Assembly: GCA_009103225.1 (NCBI GenBank)
Contig: RHPI01000772.1
Coordinates: forward strand, 685,312-749,311
Source: Chlorokybus atmophyticus
Lineage: Eukaryota; Plantae; Mesostigma and Chlorokybus algae
Reading direction: 5' to 3'
DNA: 64,000 bases
A model generated the notes under the pieces. The model was given only the letters and a program-made list of their open reading frames with translations. It made no database searches and was not told the DNA's origin. Shown here in pieces: positions 16,585 to 28,667 of the stretch. The number at the start of each line of letters is the position of its first letter. The first letter of the stretch is position 1. The translations under genes were made by a program, and so were the position numbers.

Positions 16585-18995
16585 CTAAGCAGCTGCGGTG
16601 GAACCGGTTGGAGGAGCAGGAGTCACTACAACCCCGCCAGCTGATGCAACCACTGGAAGCAATCGTGCCTGCTGTTGCTGCTGTGAAGCGCTTCCAACTT
16701 CTGCAATCTCGCTCTGATCAATCGATGAATGCGGCAAGGGGCCTTCCATGAGTTGGGCAACTTGCGTTATTGCGGCTTCGTGCGGGCTGCGCGAAGACAC
16801 GGGTGTCATTAAACTTACTCAGTGAATGAGGGAGCCGGTCAAAAACATGCACCAATGTTTCCAGCAACGTGATGACTATGCCCTACACGGCACATATGCA
16901 CCACACGCCCCATACCTATGCGCACACACACGCACACACACGCATGTACGCCACCAAATAACAAGCAGGAGCACACTTGCACGCACACCCGCAACAAAAG
17001 CATGTAGCAAGTTGCTGGGCTGACATGCCATTGCTGGGCTGATCATGTGATTACCTTGGATCGCTGTCCAGTCCCATGGAGTCACCGGCAGATCCCCAAG
17101 AGGCAGACACGGCTGCCGCAGGCAACCCGACTAACTCCGACGCATCCTGCGTGCTGCCGCTCGCATGGTGCGCATTATTGGCGTGATCCTGTGAGTTTGT
17201 AAACAACAGTGATAACTATGCCCAGTACGCGCATAGTACTCACACACAACCATTTGACGACCACTCGACTGTATCGGTGGTCCTCACCTGCAGAGACTGC
17301 CATATGGCTTCCATCACCATGATGTCCTCCAGGTTCAAATCTAGCTCGGCATCCGGCCTGCCAAGGTAACAGGTTGTTATCGGCTGAAGCATGCCATGAA
17401 ATAGATGCATCGTGCTGCACACAGCAATAAGCACAAAACGCATGCATATGCAACAACACTGATGCATACCACAAGATTTGACCGAAAGGCGCATGGCGGG
17501 TCTCATACGCGGCAGCAAGCTGGCGAAGAGAAGGGGACATCGGCAGCCTGCTAAACAACCGACTTGAGTTTGAGCAACACATGCATTGTACCATGCTGAT
17601 AAATTGCACGCATCTCATTACAACCTGCAAACCAGACGTGCTTGGATGAAAGCATAGTTGCATTGGAATGCGTCGTGTACCTCATCGGGCGTGGGCTGCC
17701 AGTTACGCTCAACGGTTGTCTTGACCCGGGAAGCTCTATGGGAGGCCACCTCCGCCTTTCAGGTTGAGAGTAGAAATACAGCGTGTCGAAGGTAGACGAG
17801 GTTGCCCTCGAAGCGCGCTGTGGAGTGCCCTGCACAAGTGTGTGAGAGTTGATATCTCACTTACACAACGTGGGTGCGTATGTGTCCTGCAAGAGGAAAG
17901 CATAACAAACTGACCTCGCCGCGGGCTTGCCTCTCTTCCTGTTCACGCGCGCGCTCTGCAGCATGATCGATTTCAGCCTGCGCCTCCTCCTGGCGCGCGC
18001 GGATGCGAGCCTCGATGACACGCTGTTCCTCCTGCTTAGAAAGCTATAGCAACTCAAAACATGAGAAAACATGTAATACACTAACCGCGAAAGTGTGACA
18101 GTTATAATTGTAATTGTACCACGCGGTCTTGGCCTTTTTCTTCTTGCGATCGCGCGCCGCGGAACTCCACAGCATAGCTCGGCGCTTTGCAGAACGGACA
18201 CTGCGCTGGTCGGGACGACTGCGGGCTTCTGACTTGCAGATAGCACTCTGCAGTGTGGGTATTGCAGCCAAACTCAGCAAGGTTACATGCAAGAGTCTAA
18301 GGAATCAAAGGAACAAGCAACAACAACTCACCGGTGCAGATGCCTTTCTTGCAGCATTTGGACCGGTTCAAGTATGGGTAATGCTGCGCACAAAAAAGAG
18401 TGAAAATACAACACGGCATGAACTCTCAACGCAAATTTGTTGAATACCGCACGCACTGGCATGCAAATGACTTGAGAAAGAAAAAAAAAGGTGGGAAGAA
18501 AACAAAAAACCTTTGGTGCGTGGCACTGCTTTGCGCTGACACTAGGCATGAGACTGTCATGACGCACCTCAAGAATATTCAGATGACAACAACCCATGCA
18601 CGAGAAGCTGACACTATCTCTGCAGGTGTTGGATAGCATATGCTTAGTGAGCACATGAAGTGTCAAACAATTCAGTGCGCGACTTACATGTACCGAGCTC
18701 GTGCAATTGCACATGCATAGCAACCTCTGTAACTCAGCGTCCCCATCTGGTCTGCATGAGATAATTACGAGAGCAATTGTTTTGTGCGTACCAGGAAGCA
18801 TATGGGGCAGTCTTCAAGGTTTCCCAGCACCTCTTCGAGTCCCGGGTAGCACGGGGCGAGCTTGGCGTCGAGGATGAGGCGACGCAGCTTTTTCGGGTCG
18901 AGGTCCTTGTGGGGGTACAGCCCGGAGACGCGGGTGTAGCGTTCCTCAACGGGGGGACCTCTCGTACGCCGCAAACCGCCCAACTTGTTGCCCAT
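16585..18995 (-). CDS. RING-type E3 ubiquitin ligase, GW2/DA2-like
   Basis: MGNKLGG...[37 protein letters not shown]...CPICFL|[17 protein letters not shown]|ECYLQV...[16 protein letters not shown]|[11 protein letters not shown], and later [15 protein letters not shown], all GW2/DA2 hallmarks. The 3' end (TAG 16585-16587) is less certain. Confidence 0.9.
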
Positions 18996-20002
18996 GCTTT
19001 TGGTGTGTGTGCACGTGTGTGCGTGGGTGTAAGGGAATGTATGTGTAGGTGTATGTGGGTTTCTGGCGATTAGGCTGCCCAATCAGCTATATACACCTGC
19101 AACCGCCTGCTGCCACCGCCGTTGGCGGCTTAGCAGCTGCTGCTACCTCCCCATCATCAAGTGAGCTGAGCAATGCCACACATGGACACAGTGAAGGCGT
19201 CAGCTTGTTGATTGCCTTGGCATGCTTCCCAAGACAATCTCACGAGTGCATATGCACACGCAGTTACAGTAATGTATAGACACATATGCGTGCACAAGAA
19301 CAGGGGTCAACCAGATTGGCCGCCAACAATATCAAGCAAGTGATTGAAACTGGTTTTGTGCATTGACTACACTGATCAACAAGGAACAACACGATTTGTG
19401 TGCATGCAATCCAGGAAGCAGCTGCGTGCAGCAATCTAAGGCATGCCTGAGCTATGCAAATAGCCTAGCACACGCATGGCGGAAATAGCCATGCGTATGC
19501 TAGCCCCTCCTCGCAACAGCTGCACTTGCAGGAAACGCTTCGCTCGCTGCACCAACACTGCACAGCCAAGCTATAACAAGAGGGCACCAACCGAGCCAGC
19601 AAAGATCACGCACAATAACATGTACATACACATACTATACTGTATACACATGCAGCCCGACACAGATCGGCATGCCGTGCCAAACCCTACACGGCTGCTG
19701 CTTGACAGGGGCCAGCTTACCTGTGCTGAGAGCATTGAGCAGAGGCATCCCAGCCTGGGGACGACCACCCCCGTCCAATGAAAACCCAACAACGGCCCCG
19801 CCCCTCAAGTAACCTTCCCCCTGGACCACCCCGCCGCCTACGCCGCCGTCACCACCGCCGCCACCCACTGCCGACTCCACCGCAGGTTGCCGCGTGGCAA
19901 GGCGTCGATATCGGTGATGGCGGCGGCACGATAGTCACACGTATAACGTCGCTTGCTGCGTGGTGTATGCGCGAACGTCGTCCTGGTGTTGGCGTGTAGT
20001 TA

Positions 20003-20125: not shown

Positions 20126-21411
20126 CGGTCCTGCAACTGATGCCACGGGTAAATTATCCGGTTCATCTTCAAGAGCGAAGCTAACATGCAGGGGATGAAT
20201 CAGCTCTCGGGTGAGAAGTGTACATGTAATGTTAAGGGTAGGTAAACCATAGGTGCACAAGATGCTGAGGTTTTGTGCATAGGGTGTGCGGCTTGAATGA
20301 GCGAGTTAAGTAGCGATTGTAATAAGTGACGTGAGTTCAAGATGTCCCTATATTATTCACTTGTCACTTAATTACAGTTCATGTCACTTAATCATAGTTT
20401 CAACTTTCAGATGTTTTACTTTTCAACCATGATCAAATTGCATAACTTCATAAGGTATGTATGTAACATGCATGTTGAATGTGTAAAATTATGGAGAACA
20501 AGTAATGATACAAGGTGATACTTTCTTGCATTGTTATCAATAGCTTTATTAAATGTTTGTATATGTATATTTAATTATTATGAAAGCATTGATGCACAAG
20601 CGCAAACAAAACTATGCTAACATTACACGACGATACACGGATGACTGGTACGACAGCTTGGCATAATATCATAATGCAATACAATGACACCCTTTATATG
20701 TAAGATGAGTGTTGGACTCACCTCATGTAAAAGTGGAGGTTTCAACATATTGTAATAAGCGACAAAAATGATATCAAGAATAGTGACAATGACAATAGTT
20801 ACAATGTTTTTATATGTTACGACATTCGTTGATTTACATGATGTAAAACACGCAACATGCATGTCAATGCTTCTTGACAATGCTGCCATGATGACTACAA
20901 CGCAGATATGGAGTATGCCAAGAAATACGTATGCAACCAAATTTACTACCTCCCTCCTCGCCAGAGGGCTGGAAGGAAGGAGTGAATATTGTGAACGACT
21001 TGCTCTTTACTATGTGACCCTCATATGCCCAAAGATCTAGGTGACTGTGCATTGCAGCTGCAAACATGAAAGCAATGTGCAACATTTCCAATGCAAGTAC
21101 TTGACAATGCTCCTCCTCCACTTTGACACTCAACATCTACCTATATGCGAACAACCCTAGTTACAAGCCAATCCAACATGTACTACGCAATGCTGACAAG
21201 GACATTGCCAAGTTGTTGGCAGCATCAATAGCCAGACGCTTGTGTCATCCACAAACATGCACAGATGCAGCATACCCACATTAAGCTGGTCCTTAGCCAA
21301 TGATGTTGCCACTACAAGTGACAACCTGCAAAACCATGTTATGCATACAGTCCTCTGGAGATGAGAAGACGGCGATGGGCAACAACTGATCAATGTACCT
21401 GTGATACATCA

Positions 21412-24400
21412 TCAGTCTTCCTTTGGCTGCAACTTATCCCTTTCCTCCGAGTCTTCTTCCGATTCTTCTTCCAATTCCTCCGAATCCTCTGCACTGTCCT
21501 GCTCATCACCACCTGACTCTGTATTTGGCTCCATGATCGGCTCTTCAATAGCGTCGACAATCGAGCCATCACTGGAATCATCGATTAATTCCTCCTCTGG
21601 TTCTTCAAGAGGCTCCTCCTTGGCCAGAAAGCGCAAAAGCCCATCCATTTCCCAAGCATTGACAACTTGGTCTCGCGTGGCCTGTCACCAAGTCCCAAAT
21701 GTTTTATATTGGCAATTTAACATCAACAGCATGGCCAACAGCAATGGTAATAGCATCAACCAACTCACCCAAGCGCGGCGTGCCAGCGCAGTGGAGTAGA
21801 AGCCAGCATTGCGCGAACTCGACACATTACCATGGTCAGCATCGCTGTCGGTGTTGAGGATCATGCAACACCCATTGTCAAGTGCACGCCTCAGCTGCCA
21901 GTGATTCAACGGGGATGTTGCTGCGTCCACTTCAACCGCCACCATGTGCTCGGCGCATGCCGTGAACACACGCTCCCAATCAAGCACCTCTGCCACCTGT
22001 GAAAACGATCACTTAGCTCCTTGCAAACAACATGCACGTGCATAGAGTGACATGTGTACTTCTGATGGTGTGTAATGCAATCGACAAGCAGTCTTACTTG
22101 TGTGTGAAGCGACAGGATGTTCACACGCGGGTGGTTGATGGCAGCGACGACACGCAATGTGTTGGCATCCGTGTGCTTTGCATCGTCTGTCTCCACATCA
22201 ACATGAGCAATTACCACATCCGCGGCTTGCAGGACCTCTTCCGAAGCCGCGAGCCCTCCCTCCGCCGTCACTAACACCTCCACGCCCTGGAAGGTGTGCA
22301 CGCCAGCCGTGTCATCTATCGTCACATTCTTCCTCTTCTTGAGTATGGCCGCAGCGTCGGTGTCTTTCTCCCCCGGCAGGTTGCAAGCAGTATACTGCAG
22401 GATGCAAACAACGTACTGCATGCCGCTTATTCGCGTCAACACGGAGTCGAGGCTGCTGTCGGCCTCGACGCGAAGCACGCCGCCATGGATGTGTGAAGGC
22501 TGGATGAGGTCGTCGGGTATCTCCCGCGTGAACTCACCCGCGTTCTCACGCAGCTCTGGCGGGACAAAGGACACGCCGAGAGTGGTGTAAACTTGCTCCT
22601 CCTGCATGACACAGAACATGCCCACATTGATTGGTGGCCTTTATGCTGCAGCCAACATTCCAATGCACAATGACATGTGTCATACAACATGTTGACAAGT
22701 AGAAGTAGGCCTCCTAGACTTGCGCAAGTAAGTCACGTACGCAAGTATTGCAGCACGCACTCACCTCTTCGCAGAAGACTTCTTCGCGGTTCTTTGTTCT
22801 GGGCGCAAGGGAGTACTCTGACAGGGAGTATCCTTTGCTCAGCGCAATGTTGCGCAGTGCCACATTGTGCTCCTTGGATCCCGTAAAATACTGTTGCAAG
22901 CGATATACACGTGTTGTGTCCATTGCTGCTGTTGGTCATGCATAAACACCGCAAGGCTCCAGTTGAAGTTTGTGGCTACCTGCAGCGCTGTCCCCCATGA
23001 CCTGGGCTCAATCACCCGCACGTCCACTTGCATCCCGCTCTCTCTGAGCACCCCGCTTGCTTTGGTGTTGCCCTGCAAACCCACACAATCAGGCCACTCC
23101 CATCAATGAAAGAGACACAACCATTCACACACAACATTGGCGGCCTACTTGCACGAGCATGCGTTGGATCTGAGGCATCCGTGAGAAGGCGGACATGATC
23201 GAGGATGCGAAGCTACTATCTGCCGCCACGAGGATGTCAATGTCGCCAATGGTCGCGCGCATGCGACGCAATGAGCCCGACACTGAAGCCTTGTGTACAC
23301 CTGAGCATGCAGGGGATCTCTTAATTGTTGCACAACTCACATACTCTCATATTCCTCACAAGCTCGCTTAACTGCATAGAGCATGCATCATTGCGTACAT
23401 ATACATGCAAACATACACACACATACACACACAACACAAGAAAGTAAGCACACATACGGCACTTAACATAGGTATACTTACACATCACCCTATGACTTGA
23501 CTTTGCAATCGCTGTCATCAATACACTTGCTGGAATCGTAAGGCTCACCCTGGATGGCTCGAAGTCCAGCAACCAAGTCCTCGGCAATCTGCCACACGTC
23601 CTTGAGGGGCAAGCGGCGTTCTTCCGTTCCGGGTTGGTGGGTGGGCTGCGCCAGAGCGGCTGTGGCTGCAGCCAGAAGCTTTGCGGCACTCCTTGGACCT
23701 ATGCCTGGCAACCTGCACAGTGCTTGAGTTAATGTATGTGCATGCACGGTTTTTTAAAGCCTTCCTTTATGCATGTAAAAAGTGTGCCATTGCTGCTCTG
23801 TATGTGTGCGTGCGTCTGCTGGTGCGCATGTGTGTTGTCAAAGCATGTTAAAGCATTCTTGATTTGGTGTAAGTGCATGCAGATACGCGTGCAAAACACC
23901 AGTGCAAGTTGTTGAATGCACTTTGCTCTTGACTTTGCACAGCAACTTCAATATGCTAGGAAACAACAGCGCAACTGCACATGCACGCGTACAACTATGG
24001 GCATCAACACTGAACATGCACTGCACTTACGATGTAAGCAGCCCAGCCTTGCCTGCAGCTTCCAGCTCCTCCACGGTCTATGCACAAGCAATAAAAACAT
24101 GAGCACAAAATACGACATGACACTGTATGACACAACCCTGGACCACCACTGACCTCGATGCCGGCCTTCCAGAATTGTGAAGCACGTTTGGGCCCAACAC
24201 CCTCAATCCTGTTTGCGTTGATGTTCGGTCAGCAAGGCTGCGACCACCACTTAGTGCTACTCTAATACCAACCCATACCACAATTGTACCTGGTCATCTC
24301 AATCACGCCTGGCGGGATCTCTGCATTGAGCCGGTCGAGCAGGTCAAACGTGCCCGAGCGCAGCAGAGACGCTATCTTCTCCGCTATCTGCTTGCCAACT

Positions 24401-25670
24401 CCCTCTAAAGTCTGCATTACACAAGATGCTGGGATGAGTCCAATCAAGGCACGCATGCAAAACTCTACTTGAGCAAGATTGCTTGGGGCAGTGTTTGCCA
24501 GCACTTGCACTTGCTAATGTTGCTGCAGTGGGTGCATGCGACAGCTGCATCAAGAATTGCTTCCAGGGTCATGCAAAAACTAAGCAACCTGCAACTGGCC
24601 TCGTCGCCACAGGTCGATCATGCTCTCATCAGCATTCTCAATGCGCTGAGCGGCAGCTCGGTAAGCTGTCACTTGAAACTTGCCCTCGCCCTCACCTGCG
24701 CAAATGTAACTGCGTGATGCTGTGTCAATGTGTAGTGAGGAACAATGTATGTTTGACTTCTACTGACCCTTGATTGCCAGGAGGTCTGCGAGGTGGTTGA
24801 ACACGCGCGCAATGGCTTCATTCGACATCATCTTGTAATCGCCCTGGCCTGGCTGCTCTGCCTCTTGATGCTCCCCTCTGAACATTGAGTAGACAATTAT
24901 TAGCACTATCAACAAACCGAGAACATCCAATTGCAAACCATGCATGCAGCAGTTCTGGTGTGAATGCTGTTTGCACAAATGCAGCCCTGGGCAACCAGCA
25001 TCAAGGCCAACCCGTTTGCACCCCACAAGTATAGTATAGTCAGCAAGGTTGCCTTGCAAATACAACTACTATGAATAGAAACTCGCCGCAGTGACCGTGA
25101 CTGTGGTTCTTGCACTTGCATGAATTGCGAACCCAAAGCAATTAGCTTTTGCATTCAATCGTTGACCTTGCTTCCTGCGTATTTTTGTACTTACTTGGTG
25201 CTGCTGCCAACTTCTTTCTTGACCCTCTTCTTGCGGGCAGGGGTGGCGGGAGCAGTGGCAGCATCGCCATCGCCAGTGGCAGCGTCAGTGGCGGCGGCGA
25301 AGGTGTCCTCCTTCTCCTGCTCCTGGGTCTGCTGGACTTCCTCCTGCGTGTCGGCTACCTGGTTGGCCGCCGCCCTGGTGCTGTCGGACTTGAAGTAGTG
25401 CTCCAGTGTGCGGGGGCTCATAGTGCTCGAGGAGGGTGTCGTTGCTGTTGTCCTGCGCGTGGGCGTTGTCCTGCTCCTCAGCCAGGTGCGCCTGCTGCTA
25501 CCTGTGGAGGTGAACAAGCTAGCTCTTGCCCTACCAACCACCTCACAGTGTGGTCTGGCTCCACCGCCGCCGCTGGAAGCCAGCAACACTCCCCCCAGGC
25601 GGGGCGCCCATGGCCGTCTCCCCGACGACGAGGACAACGCCCATGCCGCCGCCCATGCGCCACATCTCAT
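21412..25670 (-). CDS. Bacterial-type family X DNA polymerase with degenerate PHP domain, N-terminal extension and acidic tail; intron-containing
   Basis: Spliced exons: [41 protein letters not shown] (HhH), [39 protein letters not shown] (DxD within 23230-23247), MQVDVRV (third Asp), [33 protein letters not shown], then PHP-like QGVEV...HPRVNIL...LDWERVF...VAVEV...NTD...ARRAW. Colinear with bacterial PolX-PHP. Stop TGA at 21412-21414. Confidence 0.92.
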
Positions 25671-26152
25671 GGCCGGCGCCGCCAGCAGCAACGACCACAA
25701 CAACAACAACCACAATTGTGCAAAAAGGGCGGGAACCAATCTTCATCTTGCCATGCTGCCTGTCGGCGGTGGCAGTGGTGGCCTATCGTCAGTGTCCTCC
25801 TGCGTATTCTCCTTGTCGTCCTTGTCGTTGTCGGCATCGTGCTCATGCTCCTGCTCCTACGCCTACTCCTACTCCCGCTGCTGGCGCAGAGGGCCGTTGC
25901 TGCTGGCGCCCTTGAGGGCCAGACTGGGTGGAAGGTGGACAGAGGCATGCATGCTTAGTTGCTGCCTGTTGTGGTGGTGGTGGTGGTGGTGGTAGTCGTT
26001 GCTGTTGTTTGAGTTGTTGTCATTATGCCTGTTGTCGTTTGTGCTGAGCTGTGTTGTGTGGTTGTCTTGCGTTTGTTCTCAACAGGTGGCAGCGACCCTA
26101 TTGCAGTGTTTCCTCCCGGAAAAGTGACGACTGGTGTAAGAAGCTAGTTGTC

Positions 26153-28667
26153 ATGATGGAAGGTGGAGGTGCTTCTGCTTCAACGTCTCAAAGCAGTAGT
26201 AAAGCAGCCGCCGACACGCTACAACGCGTGAAGTTGAATGATGAGAACGAGAACATTGTGTATGCATTTCTTGTGCGTGACGGGCGCGTGCTCTTGAAAC
26301 GAAGGCAAGTATAGGACACACGCACACATGCACACACGCATGCTTGCGCGTGTACATACACATGCGTGCGCATACACGAGCACATGCATGTGGCCATGCT
26401 AAAGGTGAGCGCTCGCCAGCATGCACGCATGCGTCAAGACAACCCGCGCACGCACACAATCCAGCTTTGTTGTATTGCAATTGCATTGCACCATGCTTTG
26501 ATGTGTGTGCAGCAGTGAAGCAAGCGACTTGACAGTCATCAGCGCACACGTGGTGGATGAGGCCAGCAACAACAACAGGAACCACGGAGAAAATGCTGCT
26601 ACCGTTGCTGCTCGTGCAGTCGAGGCCGAAACCGGATACAGGTATACAAGAAGGCATGAAAGCACGTGCACGTGCCAACACAGTGTACTATACTGTATTC
26701 TTACATGCATGTGTGTTTGCATGCAGGCGTGAAGAGGGCGAGGTGGCTCTCATCGCACAATCCAGCAAGCCGGTACAGACTTGTTGTCGTGTGACTTGTG
26801 ACACGTATGTCCAGCCTTACTACACATGCAACCAGGTTAATGTGTCAACGTGGCTCGTACGCTCACGCCGGCCTCCACGCTCAACTGCAGGGGACACTCG
26901 TGTGGAATGGACCTGGTCGACTCCAGAAGTCGTGAGCGGGATGGCTGCCACCCTGTTGAATCAGGTTGGGGAGAGGTAGTGTCATTGTTGTCGATGTTGT
27001 TGTTGTCGTTGTCACCAATACATCTTTGATCTACGTTGCTTTGTCTGCCACTGACAGTGTTTAATCAATGTTGGTGTCACAATTTTCTGACAGTCAACTT
27101 GAGCTATCTCGCGACACCCCACTTTGCTCTATCAGGACTGGCCCGATATCAGCGAGACCGCAAGAGAAGCCACCACTGCGTTGAAGCTTGACGGCCAGAG
27201 TGGTGCTCGCCAGATGGCCGCAAAGCTACTCGACATCATCCACCACCTCACCGACAAGGTGTACCCATCCTACTCCCACTCTCTCAACTCACACATACCA
27301 ACCTTCTCTCTCCCCCTGCAGTCTCCAACCTCCCTGCACCTCTACGTGGACGTCCACGCCGTGGCGGCCGCACGCCCGGCCATGGCTCCCCTCGCGGCTG
27401 TTGCGCGCAGGGTGCTGGAAGCTGATGGTGTGGTTGATATCGATGGTGCGCGGGGGATGACAGCGTTAGAGCGACAGCGTGAGTTGTGGTTGAGTGAACT
27501 TACCTTGTGTGTGTGCACTCGGAGGCGCTGTTGTATGCATGTGTGTGCATTCGTGTGCACAAGTGCTTATTGTCAGTTCCAATGCGCGTAGGTGCATAAC
27601 AGTTGGTATCTACACACGCGCTCTTGTTACAAAAAGAGTGCGAGTGGGTGATTGGATAAGGAGTGATGTGTGTTGTTAGGGGTGAAGGAGAGGGTGGAAG
27701 CGGTGAGGCGGGAGCTTCGTGAGAGCGGGGAGCGTGTGGCGAGGCATGGCGTGGACCTCATCAAAGGTGCTGCACTGAAACGAATGTTCTATTTGCCAAC
27801 ATGCAACAACACCATCATCAGCACAGCACATAGGCATGAAGAAGGTGGCGACACTGAGCTACTCATCATCTTTGGAGGCTGCTTTCCAGCTGCTCGCAAC
27901 CGAACACAGAGACAGCATGCCAGAGGTGTCATTGTCGTCTTCATTGCTGCTGGTGTTGTTGTTGTTGCTGGTGATACTGATGTTGTTTGGTGTTACTCTC
28001 TTTCTCAGGTTATTGTGAGTGTCTCCCGGCCGGGGGGCGAAGGCAAGCGCGTTGCGGGTTTGTTGAGAGGGTGGGGCTATAAGGTATGCTGCGTTGCTTT
28101 GGTTAACACACACGGTTGTGACCAACCTCACACGGATGTTGCGTACACAACAGACCACGCTCGTATCCGATACAGCCTTCTTCTCCGCCCTCACTACGTG
28201 CGACGCGCTCCTGTTGGGCGCTGACTGTGTGTTTGTGGGCGACAGTGCTGATAATGCGGGTGGGGCCACTGGCGCTTGGACTAGGGTAGCCAACAAGGTA
28301 TGTGTGTGGATGGGAGTATATGGAATGTTTGTGTATGCGCACATGCGTCCACCTTGATGGTGTACAGGTTGGCTCAGCACCAGCAGCATTGTGGGCCCAT
28401 ACACATGGTGTGCCAACGTTTGTGTTGGCTGACACATTCAAGGCACAACCGTACGCAGAGTTGTTTCACCCAGAGTCCATCAAAGGTGATGCAGCCTCAA
28501 AGTGTGTCTCAAAGGCACGTGTTGTTCGTGATGATACATATGAGCATGTATGTGATGTGCTGCTAGGTGATGAAGAAGGTGAGGCTGAGTGCCCGCTGTT
28601 TGAGGTCGTGCAAGGTGAGTGGGTGACGCGCGTCGTGTGTGAGTATGGTGACTGGAGAAAAGCATGA
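26153..28667 (+). CDS. Nudix-like domain fused to IF-2B family (eIF2B alpha/beta/delta; MTR-1-P or ribose-1,5-bisphosphate isomerase-like) domain
   Basis: N-terminal VYAFLVRDGRVLLKRS...GENAATVAARAVEAETG (degenerate Nudix box). C-terminal GARQMA, AARPAMAPL, TLSYSSS, SRPGGEGKRVA, LLGADCV, VANKVGS and PLFEVV..EWVTRVVCEYG are IF-2B family motifs. Stop TGA at 28667. Confidence 0.85.

Follow-up and report, generated by a model that had tools for sequence, protein, structure and literature searches.

Green plants are usually credited with DNA polymerase (Pol) lambda alone in polymerase family X. In the canonical family X polymerases (PolX) of prokaryotes, such as those of Thermus thermophilus (structures 3AU2 and 3AUO) and Bacillus subtilis, an 8-kDa domain with helix-hairpin-helix (HhH) motifs is followed by fingers, palm, thumb and a C-terminal PHP domain. 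The current survey of prokaryotic PolXs defines the canonical enzymes by an acidic triad, GSxRR and YxTGSKxH(N/S), describes a PHP metal site of nine residues (HHHEHHEDH), eight or nine of which are kept in most prokaryotic PolXs, and states, as reviews also do, that eukaryotic PolXs have no PHP domain (PMC9226535). A noncanonical Deinococcus type, in which the polymerase site is dead and the PHP exonuclease is live, is also known (Prostova et al. 2022, PMC9226535), and in Escherichia coli Pol III alpha an inactive PHP is retained as a structural domain (PMC9226535). Here we describe a gene on the minus strand of a 64,000-nucleotide stretch of Chlorokybus atmophyticus DNA (the window; contig RHPI01000772.1, positions 685,312 to 749,311), located at positions 21412-25670 of this window, the product of which is a PolX of bacterial type, has a PHP-like domain in its C-terminal part and does not belong to the Pol beta/lambda/mu/TdT group. 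The gene was probably derived from Chloroflexota, and its product probably combines an active gap-filling core with a nuclease-dead PHP domain that is kept as a structural or DNA-contact module.

The algal protein and canonical prokaryotic PolX have the same domain order, in the case of PHP as judged from predicted fold and colinear alignment, and share the triad of Asp residues, GSxRR, YxTGSKxHN and the PPELRE linker, with 36-42% identity over approximately 570 residues. In contrast with canonical PolX, the algal gene is nuclear and contains 12 introns, and its product carries an N-terminal extension and an acidic tail, retains three of the nine PHP ligands and lacks HPxGR. Like the Deinococcus type, it is a two-domain PolX-PHP with one decayed catalytic centre, although as its mirror image, the polymerase site being intact and the PHP site degenerate. 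Eukaryotic Pol beta, lambda, mu and TdT share the core fold (8-kDa and polymerase domains), and with it a similar likely role in the filling of short gaps during base-excision repair or non-homologous end joining, whereas the algal protein has no BRCT domain or Ser/Pro-rich region and has a PHP-type domain. As described, E. coli Pol III alpha sets a precedent for a catalytically lost PHP inside a polymerase; this bacterial enzyme belongs to polymerase family C, and its homology to the algal PolX should be limited to the PHP fold. The gene thus appears as an expressed counter-example, from a lineage near the base of the streptophytes, to the rule that eukaryotic family X lacks PHP. No description of a eukaryotic PolX-PHP or of the Chlorokybus gene was found in the literature covered, which did not include the Chlorokybus genome paper. 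The gene model itself was already public, and what is new here is the unequal divergence of its two halves.

Gene structure and expression

A gene model was built by joining open segments with PolX motifs at GT-AG sites on the minus strand between positions 21300 and 25800. The resulting coding sequence of 2454 nucleotides ran from the ATG at 25670 to the TGA at 21414-21412, with GT-AG borders at all 12 introns and consistent phases. Its parts, by position in the window, were as follows.

21412-25670, minus strand: complete coding part of the PolX gene, with 13 exons that are separated by 12 introns (72-318 nucleotides); 817 amino acids plus stop
25195-25670, minus strand: exon 1; N-terminal extension without bacterial counterpart
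24768-24877, minus strand: exon 2; last part of the extension, followed by the first part of the 8-kDa domain
24589-24695, minus strand: exon 3; 8-kDa (HHH_8) domain
24290-24411, minus strand: exon 4; remainder of the 8-kDa domain, followed by the first HhH
24154-24208, minus strand: exon 5; HhH (IEGVGPKRA)
24031-24077, minus strand: exon 6; linker joining the HhH motifs
23549-23712, minus strand: exon 7; second HhH (LPGIGPRSA) and first part of the palm, with a six-residue insertion relative to bacterial proteins
23149-23300, minus strand: exon 8; part of the palm that carries GSLRR (369-373) and two catalytic residues, D380 and D382 (GDIDIL)
22980-23072, minus strand: exon 9; part of the palm that carries D428 (VDVRV), the third Asp of the catalytic triad
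22765-22890, minus strand: exon 10; dNTP-binding YFTGSKEHN (443-451), Pfam DNA_pol_B_thumb
22098-22601, minus strand: exon 11; last part of the polymerase core (PPELRE, 498-503), then the PHP-like domain in its N-terminal half, with R528, E530, Q553, E592 and D619; HPxGRL deleted after S648
21769-21996, minus strand: exon 12; C-terminal half of the PHP-like domain with E674, D676, D702 and D704, and a five-residue insertion that holds H707
21412-21681, minus strand: exon 13; last PHP helix, acidic tail of 72 amino acids and TGA stop

An intron-split gene with these same coordinates had been proposed in an earlier sequence-only reading of the window, and the model was identical, letter for letter, to a protein of the public C. 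atmophyticus annotation (P0001; source name eukprot jgi/Chlat1/6777/Chrsp50S06465). The same protein was the only one found at 100% identity when the largest exon (22601-22098, corresponding to residues 485-652) was used as query.

The gene is transcribed and correctly spliced. In two sequencing runs labelled as this species and obtained in two studies, X1 (2021) and X2 (2013), approximately one half of the 31-mers of the 4.5-kb stretch were present, close to the proportion that consists of exons. Each run gave a single contig on the locus, 100% identical to it, and all 12 introns were skipped in these contigs, the skipped pieces reading CT..AC on the plus strand and hence GT..AG on the strand of the gene. 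Although the runs bear no RNA label, the contigs were taken as derived from mRNA because only mRNA gives spliced contigs. Thus, the junctions, for which the sequence-only reading had looked to RNA, were all confirmed, and the frameshifted or silent locus that it had weighed was not what was found, the frame being open and the transcript spliced.

Removal of the 12 GT-AG introns in the contigs of two studies, together with the intron-split structure of the flanking genes, indicates a nuclear gene that is processed by the host. Bacterial contamination or mis-assembly, with which the prokaryotic identity of all of the best database matches would agree, is refuted by this splicing and was given practically no weight; the introns are, in addition, AT-richer than the exons (GC content of 0.45 as opposed to 0.59, with 0.67 at third codon positions of the exons), the flanking genes are intron-split and the closest bacterial PolX gene is an uninterrupted open reading frame (ORF) on a compact contig.

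Two further runs with the same species label, X3 and X4 from the 2021 study, contained only 4-7% of the gene's 31-mers (5-7% for exon 11), and nothing in them matched at a likeness of at least 95%. These shares suggest that a copy diverged by approximately 8-9% may exist in sister strains or cryptic species of Chlorokybus. Within intron 7, a simple repeat rich in GT and GTAT (23399-23441) was treated as a repeat in the contig alignment, and TG/CA-rich tracts that resemble it occur in flanking intergenic DNA at 26.2-26.7 kb.

Homology and predicted fold

Pfam matches of the whole protein included HHH_8 (E = 9.4e-15, amino acids 176-252), HHH_5 (E = 5e-14) and DNA_pol_B_thumb (E = 1.4e-21), with a palm match just below the cut-off (2.5e-5). 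When exons were scanned singly, most were too short and the thumb exon alone passed the threshold. No BRCT domain was detected by Pfam in the 817 residues, and PHP (PF02811) was unmatched even at E <= 0.1, whereas three of four bacterial proteins scanned alongside did match this family. The HhH and 8-kDa region, GSxRR followed by GDIDIL (379-384), VDVRV (427-431), YFTGS (443-447) and PPELRE, all named in the sequence-only reading along with the absence of BRCT, were recovered in the protein.

The alignment of residues 165-745 with prokaryotic PolX was colinear and spanned all domains, 8-kDa to PHP, the first bacterial residue aligning near algal residue 185 and the last PHP helix ending near residue 745. 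A word-indexed search of 5.8 billion clusters with amino acids 165-760 gave 4448 matches, the best of which, after the algal protein itself, were proteins of 571-587 amino acids at the 36-42% identity noted above, over 96% of the query and with E values down to 4e-118. The few named proteins among these best matches were annotated as 'DNA polymerase/3'-5' exonuclease PolX' of a Thermoflexales bacterium, Thermoflexus and Anaerolineae. No protein was found between 42 and 100% identity in these clusters, and eukaryotic matches may stand lower among the 4448. With exon 11 as query against 1.84 billion representatives, only the algal protein itself fell below an E value of 1e-10, and the best match other than itself had E = 1.4e-9 at 33% identity.

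An AlphaFold2 model of amino acids 165-760, made with 130 sequences, had a mean predicted local distance difference test score of 89 and a predicted template modelling score of 0.76, and its C-terminal half contained seven alternating strands and helices. The first Foldseek match of this model was T. thermophilus PolX 3AUO (template modelling scores of 0.75/0.78, 602 columns, 30% identity), followed by PolX of Deinococcus radiodurans. In contrast, structures of Pol beta and Pol lambda matched over only about 340 columns at 22-25% identity, and a grouping with Pol beta, lambda, mu or TdT, against which the sequence-only reading was to be checked, is not what these comparisons indicate. Colinear alignment to Thermus PolX reached residue 570 (E = 7e-10), in the PHP region for which no Pfam match was obtained. 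The earlier description of a PHP barrel thus holds for the predicted fold and the colinear alignment, and not for the family match or for the active site, most residues of which are gone; likewise, the proposed PolX-PHP of an algal nucleus is indeed a bacterial-type PolX, but not an intact one, three of nine PHP ligands being kept.

Phylogenetic origin

When each prokaryotic species was represented by one genome and these genomes were scanned with alignment A1, 593 relatives were identified, with Chloroflexota bins dominating the top of the list, and neither cyanobacteria nor alphaproteobacteria were present among the best 80 genome matches. With exon 11 alone, a genome scan had given 260 pattern matches, none of which was confirmed as a relative, the degenerate PHP part having diverged too far.

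In a quick tree of 100 rows, the algal protein fell within a fully supported clade of 39 rows, the labelled members of which were Chloroflexota and one Synergistota bin, and its sister group consisted of P0151, P0153, P0156, P0160, P0163 and P0174, the last named as a protein of a Thermoflexales bacterium. A tree of the polymerase half only placed it in the same neighbourhood with a support of 99, and a careful tree of 60 rows recovered the same sister group (98/94) within a clade (100/99) of Anaerolineae-type Chloroflexota. Judged from these trees, the donor phylum was most likely Chloroflexota, with a Thermoflexales- or Anaerolineae-like bacterium as the best estimate. A viral origin or vector was considered and rejected, the seven relatives on IMG/VR contigs being at most 35% identical and more distant than the Chloroflexota proteins.

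Either horizontal or endosymbiotic acquisition had been envisaged from the sequence. The horizontal route agrees with placement in the Chloroflexota-like clade, whereas endosymbiotic transfer from the ancestor of plastids or mitochondria, or ancient vertical descent of a eukaryotic PolX, is very improbable. The composition of the first 83 residues, which is like that of an organelle presequence, would fit such a descent, but the nearest labelled relatives are Chloroflexota and not cyanobacteria or alphaproteobacteria, eukaryotic proteins were absent from the interval between 42 and 100% identity, and eukaryotic Pol beta and Pol lambda match the core alone, at 22-25%.

As far as protein-level database searches show, the gene appears to be confined to Chlorokybus, and it would not be a feature of algae in general. 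Its reach would accordingly be limited to one lineage, in which it is a candidate for an extra repair activity of an aero-terrestrial alga, that role being read from sequence. As a bacterial acquisition rich in introns, it is also a well-documented one among early streptophytes.

Unequal divergence of the polymerase and PHP halves

Conserved columns were defined as those with at least 85% conservation among 129 bacterial homologues (alignment A2). By this measure and by identity to the nearest bacterial protein, P0151, the two halves of the algal protein compared as follows.

22518-24861 including introns, minus strand: polymerase core, amino acids 165-512 (8-kDa, fingers, palm and thumb); 75 of 83 conserved columns kept, 50% identity to P0151
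21631-22517 including introns, minus strand: PHP-like domain, amino acids 513-745, fold predicted and metal site degenerate; 31 of 70 conserved columns and three of nine ligands kept, 31% identity to P0151

All eight changes in the polymerase half were conservative, and the residues that define canonical PolX were all present in the alga, namely D380, D382 and D428, which align in conserved columns of A1 and A2, together with GSLRR and YFTGSKEHN. In five comparisons of one bacterium with another, the PHP half was never less conserved than the polymerase half (e.g., 57% vs 51% and 66% vs 56%).

The PHP ligand columns were 97-100% conserved in the 129 bacterial homologues, apart from the first column, which was split between H and Q and is Q in the Thermus site (QHHEHHEDH). 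The algal residues at these positions were as follows.

Ligand 1: consensus H or Q; R528 in the alga
Ligand 2: consensus H; E530 in the alga
Ligand 3: consensus H; Q553 in the alga, the Asp just before it being replaced by L552
Ligand 4: consensus E; E592 in the alga
Ligand 5: consensus H; D619 in the alga
Ligand 6: consensus H; deleted in the alga along with the HPxGRL motif
Ligand 7: consensus E; E674 in the alga
Ligand 8: consensus D; D702 in the alga
Ligand 9: consensus H; D704 in the alga

In addition, the conserved Asn after E674 was replaced by D676, and the RLDL motif was partly deleted with loss of its Asp. The nuclease half is probably inactive because only three of the nine metal ligands are kept. 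The two halves are most plainly read as a polymerase under purifying selection and a PHP active site on which selection was relaxed or shifted while the fold was retained. If so, the gene is a natural experiment in which, within a host that has its own AP (apurinic/apyrimidinic) endonucleases and exonucleases, the polymerase half was constrained and the nuclease half lost its metal site, a pattern that suggests which PolX activity is useful alone and that PHP has a structural role worth keeping.

One other protein of alignment A1, P0006 (603 amino acids), also had no Pfam PHP match, and its PHP motifs were partly substituted; ITDHS, for instance, was replaced by IIDNAR and TDAH by SSEAR. Partial erosion of PHP therefore also occurs in other database proteins.

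Proposed history and function

Bacterial genes are known to acquire introns after transfer. In the history that we favour, a bacterial canonical PolX-PHP gene would have reached the Chlorokybus nucleus by horizontal transfer and would then have gained 12 spliceosomal introns, an N-terminal extension of 164 amino acids and an acidic tail of 72. The polymerase core, held under strong constraint, would carry out template-dependent filling of short gaps in repair of the base-excision or end-joining type. The 8-kDa domain would recognise the 5'-phosphate, and 5'-deoxyribose phosphate lyase activity is probable; these expectations, like that of gap filling, are drawn from Pol beta and from the PolXs of B. 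subtilis and T. thermophilus. The bacterial enzyme also acts as a 3'-5' exonuclease and AP-endonuclease and cleans 3' ends; these activities would have been lost, their work being taken over by host enzymes, and the PHP domain itself would have been kept by its packing against the polymerase core and DNA. Since six of nine metal ligands and HPxGR are lost, the protein most likely no longer has the PHP 3'-5' exonuclease or AP endonuclease, and its residues point most likely to a gap-filling polymerase without PolX nuclease activity.

Several observations weigh against this account. Three of the lost His residues and one Asn were replaced by Asp or Glu (E530, D619, D704 and D676), and H707 lies three residues beyond the last ligand. 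The folded PHP barrel is partly expected of an AlphaFold model that is driven by a bacterial alignment. As for the donor, an approximately unbiased (AU) test in which the alga was forced across the basal branch, outside the Anaerolineae-type clade, did not reject that placement (difference in log-likelihood of 17, p = 0.095), and the exact donor is uncertain because of this result and of a terminal branch 4-5 times the median length. Finally, the longest spliced contig reached 25665 and missed the first ATG (25670) by five bases, so that translation may start at M1 or at M84, and the protein may act in the nucleus or in an organelle.

The first of these observations would be explained if the PHP domain had been remodelled and were not dead, with E530, D619, D676 and D704 joining E592, E674, D702 and possibly H707 to bind a hard metal (Mg2+ or Ca2+) and still hydrolyse DNA ends or some other phosphoester. 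Of the six His/Gln ligand positions that were lost, three indeed carry acidic and not random residues, as does the position of the conserved Asn, H707 is found in a five-residue insertion that adjoins the last motif, and the domain is of full length with a confidently predicted barrel. Nevertheless, the Asp-His of motif II has become Leu-Gln, HPxGRL and the Asp of RLDL are deleted, the majority of conserved PHP columns differ, the Pfam PHP family is unmatched, and in bacteria two ligand mutations suffice to abolish the exonuclease (PMC9226535), so that remodelling was judged unlikely.

The terminal branch of the alga (1.7-1.9 at full length and 0.98 for the polymerase half alone, compared with a median of 0.39), the eroded PHP site and the occurrence of the gene in a single lineage would also suit a transcribed relic that is heading towards a pseudogene, with both halves functionless. 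This is improbable in view of a frame that is intact over 13 exons and 817 codons, a complete set of catalytic and dNTP-binding residues in a polymerase half that keeps 90% of its conserved columns, precise splicing in two studies, and the diverged copy that may be present in sister strains. A gap-filling polymerase with a nuclease-dead PHP module thus remains the preferred reading.

Terminal extensions and flanking genes

Neither the N-terminal extension nor the C-terminal tail is found in bacterial proteins, and no Pfam domain was detected in either. Amino acids 1-83 contain 16% Arg plus Lys, 30% Ser plus Thr, 13% Ala and one acidic residue, for a net charge of +12, a composition that appears to be that of an organelle presequence. 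Amino acids 84-164 are acidic (the acidic stretch extending to residue 158) and rich in Gln, with KKRVKK at 147-152, a motif that resembles a classical nuclear localisation signal. The tail, amino acids 746-817, is 46% Asp plus Glu with a net charge of -29.

These features lend themselves to a tentative and rather doubtful alternative, in which the protein would be a gap-filling PolX of an organelle (plastid or mitochondrion), with amino acids 1-83 as a transit peptide, a nuclear isoform that starts at M84 and carries KKRVKK, and a PHP domain remodelled either to a module that is not a nuclease or to one that uses another metal. If true, no eukaryotic PolX-PHP would have had a defined role in the cell before, and the mitochondrial Pol beta of trypanosomatids would have a parallel in the green lineage.

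Upstream of the first ATG, the minus strand contains a three-codon ORF (ATG GCA AGA TGA, 25754-25743), and an ATG at 25746 opens a frame of 67 codons that overlaps the ATG at 25670 out of frame and ends at 25543, ahead of the in-frame M84 at 25421. Re-initiation at M84 is plausible if the 5' untranslated region extends to these upstream ORFs.

Downstream of the PolX gene, an ORF fragment on the minus strand (18765-19082) starts with MGNKLG, which is like an N-myristoylation sequence, and ends with CPICFL, which is like the start of a RING finger; it had no Pfam match at E <= 0.01 and was taken as a sign of an ordinary nuclear context. On the other side, an intron-split gene on the plus strand (26051-28667) lies head to head with the PolX gene, approximately 480 bp separating the two start codons. 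Its first exon is Nudix-like (IVYAFLVRDGRVLLKRR), a later exon resembles a Nudix box (GENAATVAARAVEAETG), and its last large exon matched Pfam IF-2B (the eIF2B / methylthioribose-1-phosphate isomerase family) at E = 1e-4, just below the cut-off, so that this neighbour may encode a Nudix-IF-2B fusion.

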